From Guillardia theta CCMP2712 (Eukaryota; Protista; Cryptophyta): a stretch of 64,000 nucleotides of DNA. The DNA is taken from the NCBI RefSeq assembly GCF_000315625.1, contig NW_005434510.1, forward strand, positions 45,782 to 109,781, read 5' to 3'. Below, in pieces: positions 20,140-45,897 of the stretch. Position numbers and translations under genes: made by a program. The notes under the pieces were generated by a model, which was given only the letters and a program-made list of their open reading frames with translations, was not told the DNA's origin and made no database searches. The stretch's first letter is position 1. Every line of letters starts with the position of its first letter.

Positions 20140-21488
20140 ATGATAAAGGAGGCGTCAGGGGGCGGAACTCGGAGAGGGATGGTGACGAAGGTGCTTGTGC
20201 TTGCTGTCATGCTGATGGAGGAGTTGAGAGGATGCGGAGCGACTGTGTCGACTGCATTCTGCCCTGTCAGGAGCCTGAGAGGATCCTTTGCTAGGCAAGT
20301 ACAGCTTACCTGCCATAGATGGCCCCGCAAAGAATTTTGGTTGATGCAGAAGGGGTTCGGGCAGGGGAAGGCTGGAGGCAAAGGAGTCGGGGGAGAAAGG
20401 AAGAAGAGGACCATAAAGGTTGTGGAACCCGGTGATGTTGAGAAGTCACAGGATCATAGGAGGCTGGTGGCAAATGCCGTCGCGAGGGTGGGTCCGGACA
20501 TGATTCAGTCGCTTGATAGCAAGGGATACTTCATGGCAGACGGATTCCTAGGGGAAGATGCTGGGATGGAGATGAGAAATGAGGCTCAAGAGCTGTACAA
20601 GTCAAAGAAGATGACAGTTGGACAATCTACCAGATGGAATGAGAAGCAGAACAGAACAGAGCAGTACGAGAAGTTCAACGTGTACACCATGCAGATAGAA
20701 GGCGGCAGCATGTACTTCGATGCTCCACGGTTGACCGAGTACATCGTTGAAGCTACCTCCAAGATCGCTGGTGCGATAAACAATCACCGTGGGAAATCAG
20801 TGCTGCTGGAAACACACCAGACCAACAAGCTAGCGGTGTGCGTGGGGAACGGATCGTCGTATGCGAAGCACTATGACAACCAGGTTACAACCGCATGCAA
20901 CCAAACGTCTTCTCCTCTCAGCAATCGACCATCTGATACCTGCATGCTTAGGGAGGTGCCGACAGGAGGAAGCTGACTGTCCTCTACTACATGAACCCAA
21001 GGTCTCGTTTTCTCCCTGTTGACCCGCACCTACCTCCTCAAGCCTCTACGGGCGATTGACATCTTCCTCCAGTTGGTCCGAGTCGCACGGTGGGTGTTTT
21101 CGTATCTTCGATCCCTACAACAAGGACTCGTTCACTGATGTCGCTCCCAAGTTCGACCGTGAGTCCTTGCCCCGACTCGAGCTGTTCTTTCAGCTGAGAC
21201 CCAGGAGACAGGCCTGCTGTGCTTCTGGTCAGACAAGCTGATCCACTCGGTCGAGCCTTCCTTTGCCGAGAGCGTGAGTATCGGAACTTGTCAGATTGCC
21301 AAAGAGGCTGATCAAGCTCCAGGAGGAGCAGTTCCGATACGCGCTGACGGTCTGGCTGTATGCCAACCAAGACACACAGATCGAGCATGACCCTGTGAGT
21401 CACTGTACAGGGACAGCCAAGTGAAGTCCGAGCTGATGACTCTTCACTCACGCAGGAAGCAGAGAAAGCGCATTTTCTTGAGGCCTGA
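20140..21488 (+). CDS. 2OG-Fe(II) dioxygenase (EGLN/prolyl-hydroxylase-like), probably plastid-targeted
   Basis: Spliced YAKHYDNQ-GGADRRKLTVLYYMNP-SW...GGCFRIF...VAPKFDR...FWSDKLIHSVEP...RYALTVW gives the HxD...H triad and the 2OG-binding Arg. N-terminal hydrophobic stretch followed by STA-F. Confidence 0.85.
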
Positions 21489-22155
21489 GCCATGGACACG
21501 GACGTGCTTTCTGACTTGAGCCTGGTCAGTCTGGCGCTTTCACAGTACGGTGCCAGTAGCACTCGGGGGGCTCCCGGGGGCTTCAGCAGTAGAGACTTCC
21601 AAGGCAAGCAGATCATTGTGGCGGCCGGGCATGCCTCGACGTATACACCGGGGACGACCGACCGGTGCCACTGGGCACTGGCGGCTGAGTCTGGGCCACG
21701 GAGTCCCACCGTCCGGCCAAGTTAAACTCTGTGTTGTTGTTCAACCGCCCGGTGAGTCGGGCCCCAGGGTGTACGGCGGTACCGAACGGTAGACCGGGTG
21801 GGAGCCTCCGGCCCGCCGTACTCGGAGCAGACTGACCGGGTCACAGAGTCACTGGTGGTATCCGGCAAATCAAACACAAGCAAAATTTTACTCATAATGA
21901 ATATAAACCATGCTTCCCTCAGAACTATGAATAAGGCACTACAAGAGGCATCACATTATATCTACCTCGTGTATTACCTGAGGTGTTGCGAGGCAGCTGG
22001 CCGGGAACAAACCTGCAGCAAAGTCGACACCTCACCCTCCATGAATCATGTGATGATACCACCCCCATTGATAACCTTCACTACCCCATATAATGAGACC
22101 AAAGCTACCACCCCCACCCCCATATCGTTTCTTACCTCCACTCGCAGCGGCGGGG

Positions 22156-25100
22156 ATGCTGATGCAATGTCAAGTGTGCCAGGTAAGGCCATGGGCAGGC
22201 GACAGGAGCAATGCTCCTCCTGTCCTCACAAGATCATGCAGATGAAGCTCGAGCATGGCTCTAGCAAAACTTCGAGATGCGTGAGATGGCATCCTCCCTT
22301 GTGCATAGGAGATCTGACTGAGTTGTTTTGTGGTCACTCTCACTGATTGGAAATTCGGCTCAAAAAGGCGGTGAATCCTCTCGAGCGAGCAGCTCACTGA
22401 CAACAAACGCTAGACTGACATGTTCTGCTGTCTTTGTTGATATCGCAATGGTTTGATGGGCTTGTGACATGGAATATCAGCGGGTAAGCTTTTTCTTGAG
22501 AGGGGAGAAGGCTATGTAGAAAAAGAACTGACAAAAAGCATCCCTCTTCCTCTCCCTCTTCCTCTCTCTCCCGTCCTCCATCCCTCCCTCCGCGATTTGA
22601 ACTACGTTTGTCACCGTACGGCACGAATGATGCGACGCGGGCTGATAGCGTGTACGTATCCTCTACTGCCAAGAAGGAATGTGTGCAACTGACGTAAGCT
22701 TTTGTCGATTATTGCTTCGTTTGCGCTTGAATCGTATCGATGTGTGCGTACTTCGACGGCATCTGGAATACGGGAGAATAGATTGTGAGTATTTTTGAAA
22801 GAGAGTTTGAGGGTGGAGGAGAGGAGGGAAGGTGGGGACTGATGGAAGTTTGTTCTATTCGTTCTTGTTCGCTCGTCTGCGTATGCCTGCACCTGGACTG
22901 AACAATTTTACGCGTGTGGGAGACAGTATGTAAGTACTTGAAAGTTACACGAGGAGAGGAACTGACAGGATCTTGAACATAGTACGTACGTACCTTCTAT
23001 TTCGAGGAAGGCGGAAGAATTTCAGGAGAAGGCTGACTGATTATGGTTTTTGGAATTTTCTGTGCATGAATGCAAAATCTGCTCTTGTGCTCTTGTGCGG
23101 GCTTGGACGGGATGATGATCATGTTGGGAACGACAGCGGGTGAGTGTTGCTTTCCTTCAGCAATGCAGAGTCAATGGTCAATGTTTTGGAAATGGGGTCT
23201 GACGGAGCTTTTTGTTCCTTTCTATGTGAATGTTGGCAAACAATATTGCTGGTGATGTGGACGGAACTACTGTCGGGACGCGGGACCGCAGCGGGTGAGC
23301 CGTGTTTAGGAGGGGCGTGGGAGAGGGAGGAGGCGGGGGAAGGTAGGAACTGACACTGCTTCCGTGCCTTTCCCTGTTTGGTGCCGCTCTTGAATATGCG
23401 TGTGTATTCGACGTCGGATTACGGGACTTTGAGTATAGGAGGTGAGTAGCTTCCATCTGGGAGAGCGGTGGAGTGTGAGAGAAAGCGGGGGAACTGATGA
23501 AAGCTTGCTTTTCTTTGGTGCACTTGAATGTTGCTTGGCGGTTGTACCTCGACGGGTTTTTGGCGGACACGCGGGGATTCAGCATGTAAGATTTTACTCT
23601 TGGAGGGTGACAGAGATAGTTGAGGGAAAGAGATGCGACATGGGTCTGACCAATCTGTTGCTTGGCTTTTCCCGACGCGTTCTCCACATTCGTGTTCTTG
23701 TGTTGACTACAATTGGACGGGAAAGATTGTACGTATCTTCTTTCTTGAGAGATGAGCGAAGGGAGGAGACTGACAGGATTTTATTCACGATGTTACAAAC
23801 TTGGGGGGACATGCTGGACATTAGCGGGTGAGGTTTGTCTTGTTCAAGAGGAGAGACTTGGGAGAAAAGCAGTATGAAGGGGACTGACGGAAATGTTTCA
23901 CTACGCCGTCGATGTACTTCGCGCGGGACGATGGACGGAATGGGGGATATATGAGGATAGCTTGTGCGTAACTTTGCTAGTGGAGGGAGGAGAAGGGAGA
24001 TTGAAGTAAGAACTGACGAAATTTTCCACATGGCTTGTTCTCCTCGTTGGCGTGTTTTGCGGTGCTTGGATGGGACGACGTCCTGGACGCGGGGAGACAG
24101 GTCGTATGTACCTTCCGTTTGAGGGTGATGAAACTGACTGAAGTTTCCTTTTTCTACGTGAATCAATGTGGTTTCACATTTGCTGCTGCGACGGGGACGG
24201 CGATCGGGTTGGGGAATGCGGGAGGGCAGATTATTGTGAGTATTCGCTTTGTCTGAAATCTAGTTAGATTTTATCTATCACGAACACCAGGGTTGCCCAA
24301 GCAGATGCTCTCAAGTACAACTATCCCTAAGCTATCGTGCAGACCATTAGCAGCAGAGACATCTCTCTTTTCTTTGTATGACCAAAGGCAGGCAGGGAGG
24401 GAGGGAGGGAGGCAGCGAGTCACACATAGGCAACGACAGAGAAAGAGAGAAGGAAAGTGAGATGAGATGTAAGGGCGAGAGATAGGAAAGATACTGACAT
24501 GAGGAGGCTGACGGAAGCTTGGTTTTCTTTGACATATACTTGTACTTGGTGTTCGTCGAACGCGGGAAACTGGTTGACAGTCGGTACGCATTTTCTCTTT
24601 TCTGAGGCACATGGAAAGCATAGGGGCTGACGGACGTTTGCTGCTATTTCCTGGTGTGCACTGCGTGCTGGGGGGATGGATTGGACTGTGGACATGGGGA
24701 AATGAATAGCCGGTAGGAATATTCTGTACTTACATTGGGGAGCTTGTCTTTCTTCACTGAGCCGCTCACTTGAACTTGTATATGATTTGACTGATGACGA
24801 TCGTGGTGGCGACGCTGGAGGACAGGGAGTGAGTAATTTCAGAGGGTGGTGCTTTGAGGGAGGAATGAGACTGACTGAATATTGTTCTTTTCATGTGAAA
24901 ACTTCCTAAAATGCAATGCTGCTTGTGGCTTGATGATTCGAATTTGAGAACAGAAGGTGAGCTTCTTTTTCTTCAGCGGGGAGGACGGAGAACACGTAAG
25001 GGAGGGTAGGGGACTGACAGAGCCTTCTTTTTCATTTCTGGACGCAAACTTTGCTCTTTGTGACGTAATCATGCCACAATCGGGTTGCGAGGGGACAGAT

Positions 25101-28100
25101 TGTACGTAATTTTGTTGATGCGAGACGCTGAGCGAATGGGAAGCTAACTCGAATTTTGTTTCGCACTCACCTTCATGGTAATTTGTCTCTTCAGTGCTGC
25201 GTAAGTTACTGCATTTTTCCACCTTAATTGCTCTGCTGACCCCCTGTTAGAATGTAGGTTCACATCACCTTGAATGCTCATTTGCCGGCGTAAATATGAA
25301 TTTGCATTTGTGACATACAGTGTGCCAAGTATCAGTCATGGACGGGCTACATCAAGGTAATTGAGCAGTCAGATCACCAAAAGTTTTGATGAGGCTCATG
25401 GTCGTTCTGCAGGACGGATGCATTCAATGCAAGCAAAGGCTCAAGCAGAGAGAGCAAGTGACCAAAGGCCACCAACAAAGCATACAAGAGTCTGACAAAT
25501 ACAGCAGGCGATGTTTAGTCCGATCCAGCAGCAGAAAGTGACCCAGCTGAAGGAGCAAGCAGATCCAACGGGGAGGAAGAGATCGTTTGAAGGTTTACAA
25601 GGGGGGAAAGCAAAACAACAACGTCTCGACCATGGGGATAGCTGGAGCACGCTACAATGCGCAGTAAAAGTAGCCGAACAGAATGCTACAATGGAGACAC
25701 ACACAATTTCGCTGCATTTCCTATCAGAAAAAATGTCCAGTCCAGAGCTTACTATGGGTGAAGAAGGATACAACCTTCTGTTGGATTTGTTGGAAATAAT
25801 TGAAGGCGAAGGACACAAGGCGTATAACCGTGTGAATAAGGCCTGGATGGAGGTGAGGGCATTGGGCAACGATCTTGCATGTATACAAGATGAACTGTTG
25901 GAAATAGCGTTGAACAAAGACGCAGCAGATGGCAGAGAACCAAGTGATAAGCACATCTCGATTGACTTTCATGTCAAAATATTCAGTCGGGACAAGGTTC
26001 GGAAAGATTTGCGCAATGCGAGTCAGATTCTGGTTTCTACCCTTGAAGGTGGCAATGCAACTCGATTGATGGAGTACCAGCGAGCATTGGATAGCTCTGC
26101 AAAAGCCTTGGCGACTTTCTTGGAGCGCTGGGAGGAGGACGCACAAAGGTTGCAGATGCATCAAGAAAAAGAAAACTCGAACCCCACACTTGTATGCTTC
26201 AACGCTACTGAAGATCCTACCGCTCAGTTCAGAGAAACGATATTGGCAGTGTCAAAATGGGTGAATGAGATTGGAGAGAAGTTGTCATCTACAGAAAAAA
26301 GGAGGAAGGAGGTTGCAAGAAGCTATGCTGCAAGTCTACGACAGCTTGCATTTATCCTGGAAGAGAGCAGTCTGGACCACAGCACAAGCGCCACCAACAC
26401 TATGTCGGCTGATCTTCAGGGGAACCACGTGGCACTTGAGGCGGCAATTGCAGATGAGAAGGAGATCTTGACCGACAGCTCTTTGGTGAAAAGGTTCCCA
26501 TTTGACACGTTGCTTTCTGCGTTGAGGAATGGCTTACGTTGGACAAAAACCACTTCGTTCATATCCGAGCAGCTGGTAGATGTGAGACGATTCCAAGCAG
26601 ATTTACAGACATTGAGAAACCTCGCAGACCCTGAGCGCCTGCTTGATGCTCGTAAAGAATTGAAGGACAAGCAGATTTATGACATGATGTGCAAAGAGAT
26701 AGATCTTAAATCTGAAATGGATAAGTCCAAGTTGAAGAAGCAACCAACACAAGAAATTGAAAAGGAGCTAGCTGAAGTCAGGGAGCAGATCAGATCTGCT
26801 GTCAAGGAACTTGAAGGGATTGACGGAAAGCTTTGGAGTCTTATCAGTCACTTTCCTGAACACGCTGGCAAAATGAAAGATATCCTGGAGGAGCAGGGGG
26901 TGGGGAGCGGAGACCTTCCGATATGCCACGAGAGGATCGACATGTTCCAAGTGATGGAACGAGTGGCACAGGTGGGATGCAGGGGGGCCCGACACAACGT
27001 CATACGAGTGAGTGATGGTCACGAAGAGTACATAATCAAGGAATACGGCCTCTCAGACAGCGAAAAGGAAAGAAAATGCTTCTTACGAGAAGCCAGAATC
27101 CTGCGTCGTCTGGAACACCCGTACATCGTGAAGCTGAGCAGTGCTTTCATCGAGGCAAAGCATGAGCATGGGACAGTCATGAAGGGATACCTGAAGATGC
27201 CCGTTGCCATCGGAGGAACGCTGTGGAGCTGGATGCAGCAAGTGAAGCCGAGCGACCAGCAGAAGCACCGAGTGCTGATGCAGATTCTTCAAGGGCTAGA
27301 GCACCTGCGTCAAAATAGGATCGTGCACTGCGATATCAAGCCAGCAAACATCTTGATGTCGTCACAGAACGAGCATGCCTTGCCGCAGATAGCAGACTTT
27401 GACGTTTCTAAGGAGCAAGAGGATCGTGCAAGGGAGTTGGCAGCTACTGTGACCGCTACCATAGCTGTAGGGACACTTGCCTACATGGCTCCGGAGCTGA
27501 TCAATATGCATTCAAGGCAGGGGAGAGTCTCGCACAAGTCAGACATGTACTCGTATGGGGTTTTGATGCTTGAGTTCCTGACTGAGTCTCCATCGCGAGG
27601 GATCCAAGGAGATGACACCCCGCGGCTGCTAGATCAACTGCAGCAATATGCAAAAGATCTCATTTCTCAGCTGATCATTCCCGATCCCAACAATCGACTG
27701 TCATCCATCCAAGCTCTGACTCATCCTTACTTCAGCCAAGCCATGCTTGTAGTGCAAGATCAGTTCAACAGGGAAATATGCACAGTATTCAACCCTCCTG
27801 CCTTCTGGCAGTGCGTCACGACGAGAGTGAAGATCAACGTCACTGCCGAATGGAAAGAAAGGATACAAGAGCTTATGACGTCGACGTGCAAACAGCAGTA
27901 CCTTGGGCAAAGAAGGCAAGGCAAAGGCTTGAACTACACAGGCTTCCAGGTAGAGCGAGTCTTCCGTGTAGAGAATCAGGACCTGTGGTCGGGGTATGCC
28001 CAGGAGCGCTCCCGCATCATGCAGCAAGGAACACGTCATCCAGAGACTCAAGTGAGCACGTGGCGAGACTGGATGGAAGACGAACTTCTGGTGGACAAGG

Positions 28101-28507
28101 CGAGCAACGAAGTGTTTCTGTTTCATGGCACCAGCTTCAACATGGCTGACGTCATCTTGACGTCTGGATTCGACGAGCGTGTGTGCAACCTGAATGGACT
28201 CTTCGGAGCTGGAATCTACCTGGCCGAGAACTCCAGCAAGAGCGACGAATACTGCGTGCCGGACAGCCAAGGCATCTGCCGCATGTTCCTCGTACGTTCT
28301 GCGCTTGGAACACCGTTTGTAGCTCAGAGATCCATGCAACGGGCTAGAAGGCCTCCTACGAACTCCACTGGGTTCTTATATGACTCTGTGATCGGGGTGA
28401 CCAAAGAAACACATCCAGCAGCCCTTTTGGAGTGGTACAGGGAGTTCATAGTGTACTACCGTCGACAGACCTACCCGGAGTTTCTGATAGAGTTCAAACG
28501 CGTGTAA
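22156..28507 (+). CDS. predicted single gene: Cys/His-rich (RING-like) N-terminus built partly from micro-exons + coiled coil + protein kinase + PARP catalytic domain
   Basis: Exon 22156-22182 (MLMQCQVCQ), exon 22242-22280 (MKLEHGSSKTSRC), 22 micro-exons 22368-25253, exon 25321-25356 (CAKYQSWTGYIK), exon 25413-25457 (DGCIQCKQRLKQREQ), terminal exon 25505-28507. All junctions are GT-AG and phase 0. The 5' model is inferred; the kinase-PARP exon is certain. Confidence 0.7.
22368..25253 (+). other. array of 22 predicted micro-exons (20 x 3 nt, 2 x 6 nt)
   Basis: AG|NNN|GT at 22368 GCG, 22481 CGG, 22649 CGT, 22782 ATT, 22927 TAT, 22983 TAC, 23137 CGG, 23292 CGG, 23439 GAG, 23583 CAT, 23726 ATT, 23825 CGG, 23961 CTT, 24101 GTC, 24230 ATTATT, 24581 TCG, 24710 CCG, 24826 GGA, 24954 AAG, 25099 ATT, 25195 TGCTGC, 25251 AAT. 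Donors are GTRAG/GTACG/GTATG-type, with an upstream CTGAC/CTGAT/CTAAC. Confidence 0.8.
25511..28507 (+). CDS. intronless 998-aa ORF: coiled coil, Ser/Thr-type kinase, tankyrase-like PARP catalytic domain
   Basis: Kinase: YIIKEY, FLREARILRRLEHPYIVKL, VHCDIKPANILM, IADFDVSK, GTLAYMAPE, KSDMYSYG. PARP: FLFHGTS, GFDERVCNLNGLFGAGIYLAENSSKSDEY, REFIVY...TYPEFLIEF (H-Y-E triad). Confidence 0.95.
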   Translation: MFSPIQQQKVTQLKEQADPTGRKRSFEGLQGGKAKQQRLDHGDSWSTLQCAVKVAEQNATMETHTISLHFLSEKMSSPELTMGEEGYNLLLDLLEIIEGEGHKAYNRVNKAWMEVRALGNDLACIQDELLEIALNKDAADGREPSDKHISIDFHVKIFSRDKVRKDLRNASQILVSTLEGGNATRLMEYQRALDSSAKALATFLERWEEDAQRLQMHQEKENSNPTLVCFNATEDPTAQFRETILAVSKWVNEIGEKLSSTEKRRKEVARSYAASLRQLAFILEESSLDHSTSATNTMSADLQGNHVALEAAIADEKEILTDSSLVKRFPFDTLLSALRNGLRWTKTTSFISEQLVDVRRFQADLQTLRNLADPERLLDARKELKDKQIYDMMCKEIDLKSEMDKSKLKKQPTQEIEKELAEVREQIRSAVKELEGIDGKLWSLISHFPEHAGKMKDILEEQGVGSGDLPICHERIDMFQVMERVAQVGCRGARHNVIRVSDGHEEYIIKEYGLSDSEKERKCFLREARILRRLEHPYIVKLSSAFIEAKHEHGTVMKGYLKMPVAIGGTLWSWMQQVKPSDQQKHRVLMQILQGLEHLRQNRIVHCDIKPANILMSSQNEHALPQIADFDVSKEQEDRARELAATVTATIAVGTLAYMAPELINMHSRQGRVSHKSDMYSYGVLMLEFLTESPSRGIQGDDTPRLLDQLQQYAKDLISQLIIPDPNNRLSSIQALTHPYFSQAMLVVQDQFNREICTVFNPPAFWQCVTTRVKINVTAEWKERIQELMTSTCKQQYLGQRRQGKGLNYTGFQVERVFRVENQDLWSGYAQERSRIMQQGTRHPETQVSTWRDWMEDELLVDKASNEVFLFHGTSFNMADVILTSGFDERVCNLNGLFGAGIYLAENSSKSDEYCVPDSQGICRMFLVRSALGTPFVAQRSMQRARRPPTNSTGFLYDSVIGVTKETHPAALLEWYREFIVYYRRQTYPEFLIEFKRV

Positions 28508-45693: not shown

Positions 45694-45897
45694 TGTGTAT
45701 GTCTGCAACTAATGAAATGTGTGTTGAAAAGGCCAAGTCTGTTATCAGTGTCGGGATGGTTGACAACACAATCCTGCACATCCTCGTTGAATCCTCAGAC
45801 AACCCCTTCGGACCTGTGTTGTTCTTCATTTCATTAGCTTTACAAACTGCACTTTCCATTCATCTTGCACCAAACGACCTTCATCATGGAATATCCC

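Follow-up and report, generated by a model that had tools for sequence, protein, structure and literature searches.

The micro-exon genes (MEGs) of schistosomes, which encode secreted, alternatively spliced proteins, have exons of 3-81 bp and introns of up to 5 kb (PMC10526429). We describe here a layout that recalls them, an array of single-codon exons at 22281-25320 of a 64,000-nt stretch of the Guillardia theta CCMP2712 genome (the window; positions 45,782 to 109,781 of contig NW_005434510.1, assembly GCF_000315625.1), in the 5' part of a gene whose product combines protein kinase and PARP domains. As in the MEGs, tandem, very short symmetric exons make up a run of coding sequence, the reading frame survives their gain, loss or skipping, and the genes form a multigene family. 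MEG exons, however, are mostly longer than one codon and lie among long introns, whereas nearly all exons of the window array are one codon and its introns are short look-alikes, one of 345 nt and the rest of 50-165 nt. The products of MEGs are secreted and variable, while the window chain, only 23 of 1071 residues, is an insert in a cytosolic-looking signalling protein (N-terminus MLMQCQVCQ..., with no obvious signal peptide by eye) seen as one isoform. We know of no sequence relationship between the two.

Vertebrate neural micro-exons (3-27 nt, SRRM4-dependent) are likewise too short for exon definition; in the window array the region between a branch-like box and the acceptor is 75-117 nt long, free of AG and unstructured. 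The neural exons, in contrast, are isolated regulated cassettes served by a dedicated factor in long-intron genomes, where the window array is a run of 21 that seem to be constitutive, in a genome of short introns and intron definition. Recursive splicing at ratchet points (AG|GT), as in Drosophila and vertebrates, also removes a long non-coding stretch piecewise, and one window junction, 24100|24101, similarly leaves nothing behind; but the other 21 junctions keep 3 or 6 coding nucleotides, removal is not ordered 5' to 3', and the pieces are ~140 nt rather than tens of kilobases. Isolated exons of 3 nt have been described from animals, plants and dinoflagellates (PMC8831610, PMC12584245), and human RPS24 has three consecutive micro-exons of 3, 18 and 22 bp (PMC12207440). 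Such exons in RPS24 and in plant clusters are real, with canonical sites, and sometimes adjacent (PMC12207440, PMC8831610), but they come two or three in a row, against 21-68 here, and the introns between them are not copies of one another in tandem. Tandem duplication and introners also give rise to introns from duplicated DNA that carries splice signals, and the units within the array are related to one another; unlike introners, the unit DNA forms no dispersed family and is found only at its own locus, with growth that would be local and would add one codon per new intron.

A survey of the open literature, subscription journals being outside its coverage, returned no array of single-codon exons and no micro-exon report for Guillardia or any cryptophyte. 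The layout takes micro-exon architecture to a new extreme, and this array is one of a family. Twenty-one one-codon exons in a row (at least 68 in a sister gene), correctly spliced, lie well beyond documented minimal exon size and density.

The gene and its spliced transcripts

cDNA sequences show the 21 micro-exons spliced together in full and in the order they have in the genome. The evidence comes from contigs of three sequencing runs, X1 (organism label A) and X2 and X4 (label B), from three studies, placed on positions 21000-25900 of the window. The contigs carry clean GT..AG joints of the ordinary introns 21159-21211, 21274-21322, 21395-21455, 22183-22241, 25357-25412 and 25458-25507, and for this reason they are taken as cDNA. 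After 22281, X1 and X2 read (G)CGCGGCGTATTTATTACCGGCGGGAGCATA, that is, GCG CGG CGT ATT TAT TAC CGG CGG GAG CAT A, and X4 reads ACTTCGAGATGC-GCG-CGG-CGT-ATT-TAT before 22983. Over the downstream half X1 gives ATTATT-TCG-CCG-GGA-AAG-ATT-TGCTGC-AAT, and also AAG ATT TGCTGC AAT followed by TGTGCCAAGTA, which leads into the exon at 25321. Letters internal to joints (ATT-TAT, CGG-GAG-CAT, CG(G), (G)GA and TGCTGC) fall at the expected places. X1 and X2 have identical letters wherever both span the chain; the letters shown for X4 cover only six micro-exons and agree with the other two runs, the rest matching in insert length. The chain as used consists of 21 micro-exons, 69 nt in all, reading ARRIYYRREHIRLIISPGKICCN.

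Several contigs are hybrids that join retained array introns to spliced micro-exons. Record 2 of X1 runs 22503-22651, ATTTAT, 22983-23139; record 17 of X4 retains the introns of 22986-23291 with the remainder spliced; and record 13 of X2 is collinear over 23726-24100. The DNA of three array units matches only itself in the 87-Mb assembly (87,145,349 bases, 669 contigs), and since array DNA is single-copy the hybrids can derive only from the window locus. They also show that array introns are removed independently, in no fixed order. Depth in X1 is 0-18 in bins of array intron against 86-136 in flanking exons, so the spliced form dominates, though retention is common. It is scarcely credible, in our judgement, that nothing is spliced here, with the 3 kb as one long intron or an untranscribed repeat and the chain as an assembly artefact, DNA contamination or an intronless processed copy. 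The run type of the contig sets was only guessed as RNA, and these Logan contigs are short de Bruijn pieces, which speaks for such an origin. Yet the same contigs hold the ordinary joints of neighbouring introns, the hybrids link the locus's own intron sequence directly to spliced micro-exons, the runs of three studies agree on every letter shown, and the array DNA occurs just once in the assembly.

The gene has 26 exons, all phase 0 and all multiples of three, and encodes a protein of 1071 amino acids; exon-by-exon translation runs for 1071 codons from the ATG at 22156, which has in-frame stops upstream of it, to the stop at 28507. The protein's N-terminal module is cysteine-rich, and a long linker separates it from the protein kinase domain and the PARP catalytic domain that follow. 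The 23 chain codons come from 21 exons (19 of 3 nt and two of 6 nt) and lie between the third cysteine, at the end of exon 22242-22280, and a conserved CC-N-C motif. The parts of the gene are as follows.

22156..22182, + strand: exon 1, with the start codon, MLMQCQVCQ (first CxxC knuckle); X1 joint 22179>22239 (cut +3, giving 22182|22242), GT..AG
22183..22241, + strand: conventional 59-nt intron; RNA joint
22242..22280, + strand: exon 2, MKLEHGSSKTSRC, whose final Cys precedes the array in all paralogs; loose ends of X1, X2 and X4 start directly after it
22281..25320, + strand: micro-exon array, 22 introns and 21 used micro-exons
25321..25356, + strand: exon CAKYQSWTGYIK, the family's conserved C-[AS]-[KR]..W..Y exon; RNA joints
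25413..25457, + strand: exon DGCIQCKQRLKQREQ, last CxxC knuckle; joints 25354>25411 and 25457>25508 in X1, X2 and X4
25508..28507, + strand: last exon, 999 codons plus stop, protein kinase and PARP catalytic domains

Within the array, the evidence for each codon consists of loose ends, joints and joint-internal letters of the X1, X2 and X4 contigs.

22368..22370, + strand: micro-exon 1, GCG (A); X1/X2 loose end after 22281, X4 loose end before 22983
22481..22483, + strand: micro-exon 2, CGG (R); X1/X2 loose end after 22281, X4 loose end before 22983
22649..22651, + strand: micro-exon 3, CGT (R); loose ends, joint 22651>22983
22782..22784, + strand: micro-exon 4, ATT (I); X1 letters ATTTAT between 22651 and 22983
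22927..22929, + strand: micro-exon 5, TAT (Y); X1 ATTTAT, X2 TAT between 22784 and 22983
22983..22985, + strand: micro-exon 6, TAC (Y); joint target 22983, loose ends
23137..23139, + strand: micro-exon 7, CGG (R); joint 23139>23726 in X1 and X2
23292..23294, + strand: micro-exon 8, CGG (R); letters CGGGAGCAT between 23139 and 23726
23439..23441, + strand: micro-exon 9, GAG (E); letters CGGGAGCAT between 23139 and 23726
23583..23585, + strand: micro-exon 10, CAT (H); letters CGGGAGCAT between 23139 and 23726
23726..23728, + strand: micro-exon 11, ATT (I); joint target 23726, X2 loose end CGGGAGCATATT
23825..23827, + strand: micro-exon 12, CGG (R); X1 letters CG between 23728 and 23960, joint 23826>23960
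23961..23963, + strand: micro-exon 13, CTT (L); joint 23826>23960 (cut +1)
24101..24103, + strand: predicted micro-exon GTC, not included, the donor used being the GT at 24101; X1 loose end, X2 joint, lengths
24230..24235, + strand: micro-exon 14, ATTATT (II); X1 loose end behind 24100
24581..24583, + strand: micro-exon 15, TCG (S); X1 loose end behind 24100
24710..24712, + strand: micro-exon 16, CCG (P); X1 loose end behind 24100, joint 24713>24954
24826..24828, + strand: micro-exon 17, GGA (G); letters GA between 24713 and 24954, loose ends
24954..24956, + strand: micro-exon 18, AAG (K); loose end behind 24828
25099..25101, + strand: micro-exon 19, ATT (I); joint 25101>25251
25195..25200, + strand: micro-exon 20, TGCTGC (CC), kept as TGYTGY in paralogs; X1 and X2 letters between 25101 and 25251, joint 25200>25251 in X1, X2 and X4
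25251..25253, + strand: micro-exon 21, AAT (N), kept as AAT or CAA in paralogs; loose ends ...TGCTGCAAT before 25321

The initial annotation, made from the DNA letters, had picked out 22 candidate sites in this region, 20 of the form AG-NNN-GT and two AG-N6-GT (24230-24235, ATTATT, and 25195-25200, TGCTGC). Every one of them is present, with NAG before it and GT after it as expected of a spliceosomal micro-exon, and the 22 codons do read A R R I Y Y R R E H I R L V II S P G K I CC N. The spacing of exactly three between AG and donor occurs 20 times in 22281-25320, against a mean of 1.08 and a maximum of 5 in 500 dinucleotide shuffles; the other spacings from 0 to 15 nt between AG and a donor-like hexamer occur 0-5 times each, and three on the - strand once. 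The further proposal that these exons are spliced in frame and in genomic order is borne out at 21 of the 22 sites by the cDNA contigs from three studies. It was also correctly pointed out that single-codon exons would escape standard gene predictors, and that with every micro-exon a multiple of three any subset would keep the frame.

The last exon scores above the curated Pfam cut-offs for both Pkinase (residues 497-741, 8.4e-41, 140.5 bits, cut-off 31.7) and PARP (residues 796-996, 1.4e-19, 70.9 bits, cut-off 26.7), and the product is a kinase-PARP fusion. Compared with the protein collection, this exon has no close relative (best 27% identity), and no transcript-derived protein there spans the chain. 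Its start had been placed at 25505. The acceptor is a tandem cagcag (NAGNAG) at 25500-25508, and all three contig runs take the second AG, giving a start at 25508; the first would add one codon. With the chain as seen in RNA, the N-terminal cysteines are spaced C-x2-C-x13-C-x20-CC-x-C-x13-C-x2-C. A RING finger (C3HC4 / C4C4), with spacing C-x2-C-x9-39-C-x1-3-[HC]-x2-3-C-x2-C-x4-48-C-x2-C, was considered and rejected, as the module does not fit it with the chain or with the chain removed (C-CC-x-C).

The zero-length junction and the question of exon skipping

The one predicted codon that transcripts lack is GTC at 24101-24103, which the initial annotation had counted as a micro-exon and which is left out of every transcript form seen. 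The letters of X1 behind 24100 begin ATTATTTCG, not GTC; an X2 joint, 24097>24227 (cut +3), skips 24101-24229 with GT..AG ends; the full chain of X1 after 22281 is 68 letters long where 71 were expected; and record 17 of X4 has 44 letters between 23295 and 25321 where 47 were expected. The donor used is the GT of GTC itself, abutting the acceptor AG at 24099-24100 (cag|GTCGTA), which makes 24100|24101 a zero-length junction like those of recursive splicing. The contigs include an intermediate that has lost the downstream half, but not the upstream half, at this point. It is the only recursive splice site of the array: the other 21 junctions retain 3-6 nt, so that the array taken as a whole does not qualify as strict recursive splicing. 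The donor of this unit has slid by 3 nt, which brings it right up against the acceptor (cag|GT) and leaves no room for a codon.

The omission of GTC bears on whether the array is a combinatorial diversifier, its micro-exons acting as cassette exons whose regulated skipping rewrites the loop one residue at a time within a cell or across conditions. Frame would be kept by any subset, one predicted codon is indeed left out, and contigs, which cannot show rare forms, would hide minor variants. However, a single isoform is seen in the contigs of three studies, which agree in order and content at every point where letters or lengths are available; GTC is missing throughout, which the shifted donor explains; and intron retention is the only heterogeneity seen. 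We consider a diversifier improbable, and the earlier suggestion of free skipping, with up to 2^22 isoforms, finds no support in these transcripts.

Intron units and their recognition

The array introns and their adjoining codons form a series of related units. Tandem Repeats Finder reports no ~140-bp period in the array, because the units are less than 70% alike; their repeat nature is shown by alignment instead. Sixteen aligned units have a mean column identity of 44%, and the invariant columns are exactly GT, G5, CTGA, AG and the next GT. Units of the same array have pairwise identities of 0.48-0.50, compared with 0.38 for shuffled partners and 0.32-0.48 between units of different arrays. 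Each unit proceeds from a donor (GTRAGT or GTACGT) through a purine-rich stretch, ACTGAC, a T-rich run and a spacer to a purine-rich GGA-YAG acceptor. Every unit keeps its splice signals despite ~50% divergence, and the window array is old, given unit identity of only ~50%. The longest array intron (24236-24580, 345 nt) is otherwise a normal unit, enlarged in its 5' part by ~200 bases that include an (AGGG)n/(AGGCAGGCAGGG) purine repeat at 24386-24415; 24380-24423 was excluded from read placement as a repeat.

The branch-like box, CTGA(C/T), lies 30-60 nt past the donor in its ACTGAC form, and the acceptor follows 75-117 nt past the box. In nearby ordinary introns with such a box that distance is 11-23 nt: the six RNA-confirmed ordinary introns of the window are 49-61 nt long, and four of the six have a YTRAY branch-like motif 11-23 nt from the 3' end, two being without one. 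The mode of intron length in the G. theta genome is 47 nt, and its GC content 52.9% (PMC6260743). The 5' half of an array intron is thus the size of a whole normal intron, and the acceptor has been postponed. The intervening spacer, taken to start 12 nt past the box and to stop 10 nt short of the acceptor, is an AG exclusion zone, with no AG in 1,076 nt where base composition predicts 45; GA occurs 63 times in the same letters. Folding that would bring box and acceptor together was not found in the 16 spacers, whose mean z is +0.43 against shuffles. A model in which the acceptor lies a few nucleotides after ACTGAC, making exons of ~85 nt, was also discarded, as some units lack such an AG and the RNA uses the distal YAG.

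We consider it very probable that this is a 26-exon kinase-PARP gene whose array introns are individually defined, each with a distant branch box, and whose array grew by tandem duplication. Each array intron would be recognised on its own, by intron definition: U1 would bind the donor and U2 the ACTGAC box, which lie a normal distance apart, and the first ~45-60 nt resemble a whole short intron of the kind usual in this genome. Once the first step is complete, the 3' splice site would be the nearest usable YAG beyond the distant branch point, which would account for the strictness of the AG-free zone. The GAG found directly before many of the CAG or TAG acceptors is the poorest type of acceptor. 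The long unpaired spacer may serve to keep the branch-site complex clear of the next U1 site, 3 nt past the acceptor. The same steric reasoning has been applied to vertebrate neural micro-exons, in which the region from branchpoint to 3' splice site is lengthened and accessible (PMC12871342). The arrays offer a test bed for intron definition where the exon between is smaller than the footprint of U1 or U2AF, for 3' splice site choice far from the branch point, and for tandem duplication that makes introns and coding sequence together.

Several points weigh against this explanation. The ACTGAC box is a putative branch point by its match to a motif, and some units, such as the introns ending at 25194 and 25320, do without it; the steric rationale for the spacer is our own inference. 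The paralog on contig C105 (L022, described below) has shorter introns, with a median of 85 nt and ~41 nt from box to acceptor. Exclusion of GTC from the fully spliced form stands on two length counts, the direct letters coming only from intron-retaining contigs, and the letters of the CTT-ATTATT junction were not seen in a fully spliced contig. A raw-read RNA run, X16, placed only six reads on 21000-25900, too few for use. Translation of the chain, finally, is deduced from its frame, lack of stops and conserved flanks rather than from peptides.

A family of arrays in the genome

The array had been presented as a one-off; a genome scan shows it instead to be one member of a genome-wide family. 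The scan used a triple pattern, YAG-NNN-GTRAG three times with gaps of 60-160 nt, built from 11-letter acceptor-codon-donor units with no CTGAY box, and returned 353 matches against 2 in the reversed control. Arrays were parsed at 16 of 17 further loci, with from 9 to at least 68 micro-exons, nearly all of 3 nt and some of 6 or 9 nt. The evidence for splicing is from the window array, the other arrays being known from patterns in genomic DNA. Seven arrays together have 200 micro-exons with 211 codons and no stop (P ~1.7e-4 given positional base composition); the base at acceptor position -3 is C or T in 182 of the 200, and the third codon base is G or T in 80% of the codons. AG-free zones are just as pronounced in other arrays, for instance with 1 AG where 67 are expected, or none where 19 are.

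The location is as constant as the pattern. Counting the window, 15 arrays had a downstream end that was seen or matched, and 14 of these lie at the same point of one paralogous cysteine-rich N-terminal module. Nine of the 15, the window array among them, end in TGYTGY (CC) and AAT or CAA (N/Q) micro-exons, and the next exon is C-[AS]-[KR]..W..Y in all seven of the nine where it was read or matched. In five of the 15 there follows an exon starting CC[IVL]CY.D..SE...C.HCK.RR, and L038 has neither downstream motif. On the upstream side, the preceding exon has ..[ST]-[KR]-C as its last residues in the window, L023 and L025, and ..N-V-C in L022. Downstream domains vary: the window gene has kinase and PARP domains, while two paralogs encode a Roc-COR GTPase. 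In these, L025 (G000:C72, 3578-5500) and L027 (G000:C19, 3192-5000), the arrays lead into Roc GTPase and COR-A domains, as in ROCO-type signalling proteins. The N-terminal Cys module and its array are therefore common to genes with different output domains. No zinc-finger Pfam family was found for the exon holding the module's second half in L025 and L027, the joined module being outside that search.

Arrays would grow by local tandem duplication of units of intron plus one codon inside the cysteine-module loop of this large paralogous family, and would grow or shrink by unequal recombination between look-alike introns, whole codons being gained or lost with the frame never broken. Some arrays are young, such as that of L025, with unit identities of 71-74% and a maximum of 91%. 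Multi-codon repeats are seen in L035 (G000:C70:332500-341000, - strand), whose chain repeats ..RVCPRS..YVCPRG.., and in L024 (G000:C75:34000-41000), with D-Y-G / Y-Y-D-Y, and they indicate that blocks of several intron-plus-codon units were duplicated together. The units are not an introner or other transposon-derived intron family, since there are no dispersed copies and the three window units searched match only their own locus in the assembly. The largest array, L022 (G000:C105:47000-56999), runs from 2868 to beyond 9862 and continues past the DNA examined; it has at least 68 micro-exons of 3, 6 and a few of 9 nt, introns of ~85 nt, and a hydrophobic chain rich in Trp, Leu, Val and Ala.

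What the chains are for is a separate matter. They may be a neutral by-product, an intronic minisatellite with complete splice signals that leaves 3-nt scars in a tolerant loop, the residues themselves having no specific role, so that selection would keep only the spliceability of the units and freedom from stops. This reading concerns purpose only and agrees with the duplication and intron-definition mechanism preferred above. Chain length (9 to at least 68 micro-exons) and composition differ widely among paralogs whose flanking Cys motifs are conserved, the closest matches of a unit are its neighbours within the array, block duplications are visible (VCPR in L035, D-Y-G in L024), and the preference for G or T at the third base fits a donor -1 preference rather than protein needs. 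Against it, the old window array still splices at all units, the insertion point is the same in the great majority of paralogs checked, suggesting an insert long tolerated or wanted, and some chains have a coherent character (Trp/Leu-rich, Arg-rich). We give neutrality somewhat less than an even chance.

A more speculative reading, which we put forward tentatively and think unlikely, is that the arrays are an evolved device for codon-resolution variation of the Cys-module loop across a large family of signalling proteins (kinase-PARP, Roc-COR), a form of single-residue exon shuffling that uses look-alike introns as large, safe recombination targets and depends on a spliceosome habit peculiar to the lineage. 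If so, unequal crossing-over would add, remove and shuffle single codons, and the layout could also permit regulated skipping. With that habit the spliceosome would use a branch site far upstream, scan as far as the first AG and tolerate a donor that lies 3 nt beyond an acceptor.

Exons of this size are beyond what gene predictors and read aligners can represent, and the N-termini of the family's signalling proteins are probably mis-annotated in this reference alga. Similar arrays may lie hidden in other protist genomes. Any census of arrays needs to filter out short-unit satellites with chance AG-NNN-GT matches, as at G000:C54:28728-29338, C94:85193-86283, C94:182763-183556, C42:9499-10163 and C12:382140-382435, which consist of 20-, 40-, 27- and 30-bp units and (AGTG)n.

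The gene upstream of the array gene, on the + strand at 21000-21912, is highly expressed (X1 depth 112) and has three introns of 49-61 nt. Its transcript ends at ~21909-21912, ~250 nt 5' of the start codon of the micro-exon gene. In this 3' end, at 21862-21863, an X4 contig and the window disagree at two neighbouring positions (C>G, C>A) located 47-48 nt from the end of the contig; the difference may be an assembly-end error or a strain difference.

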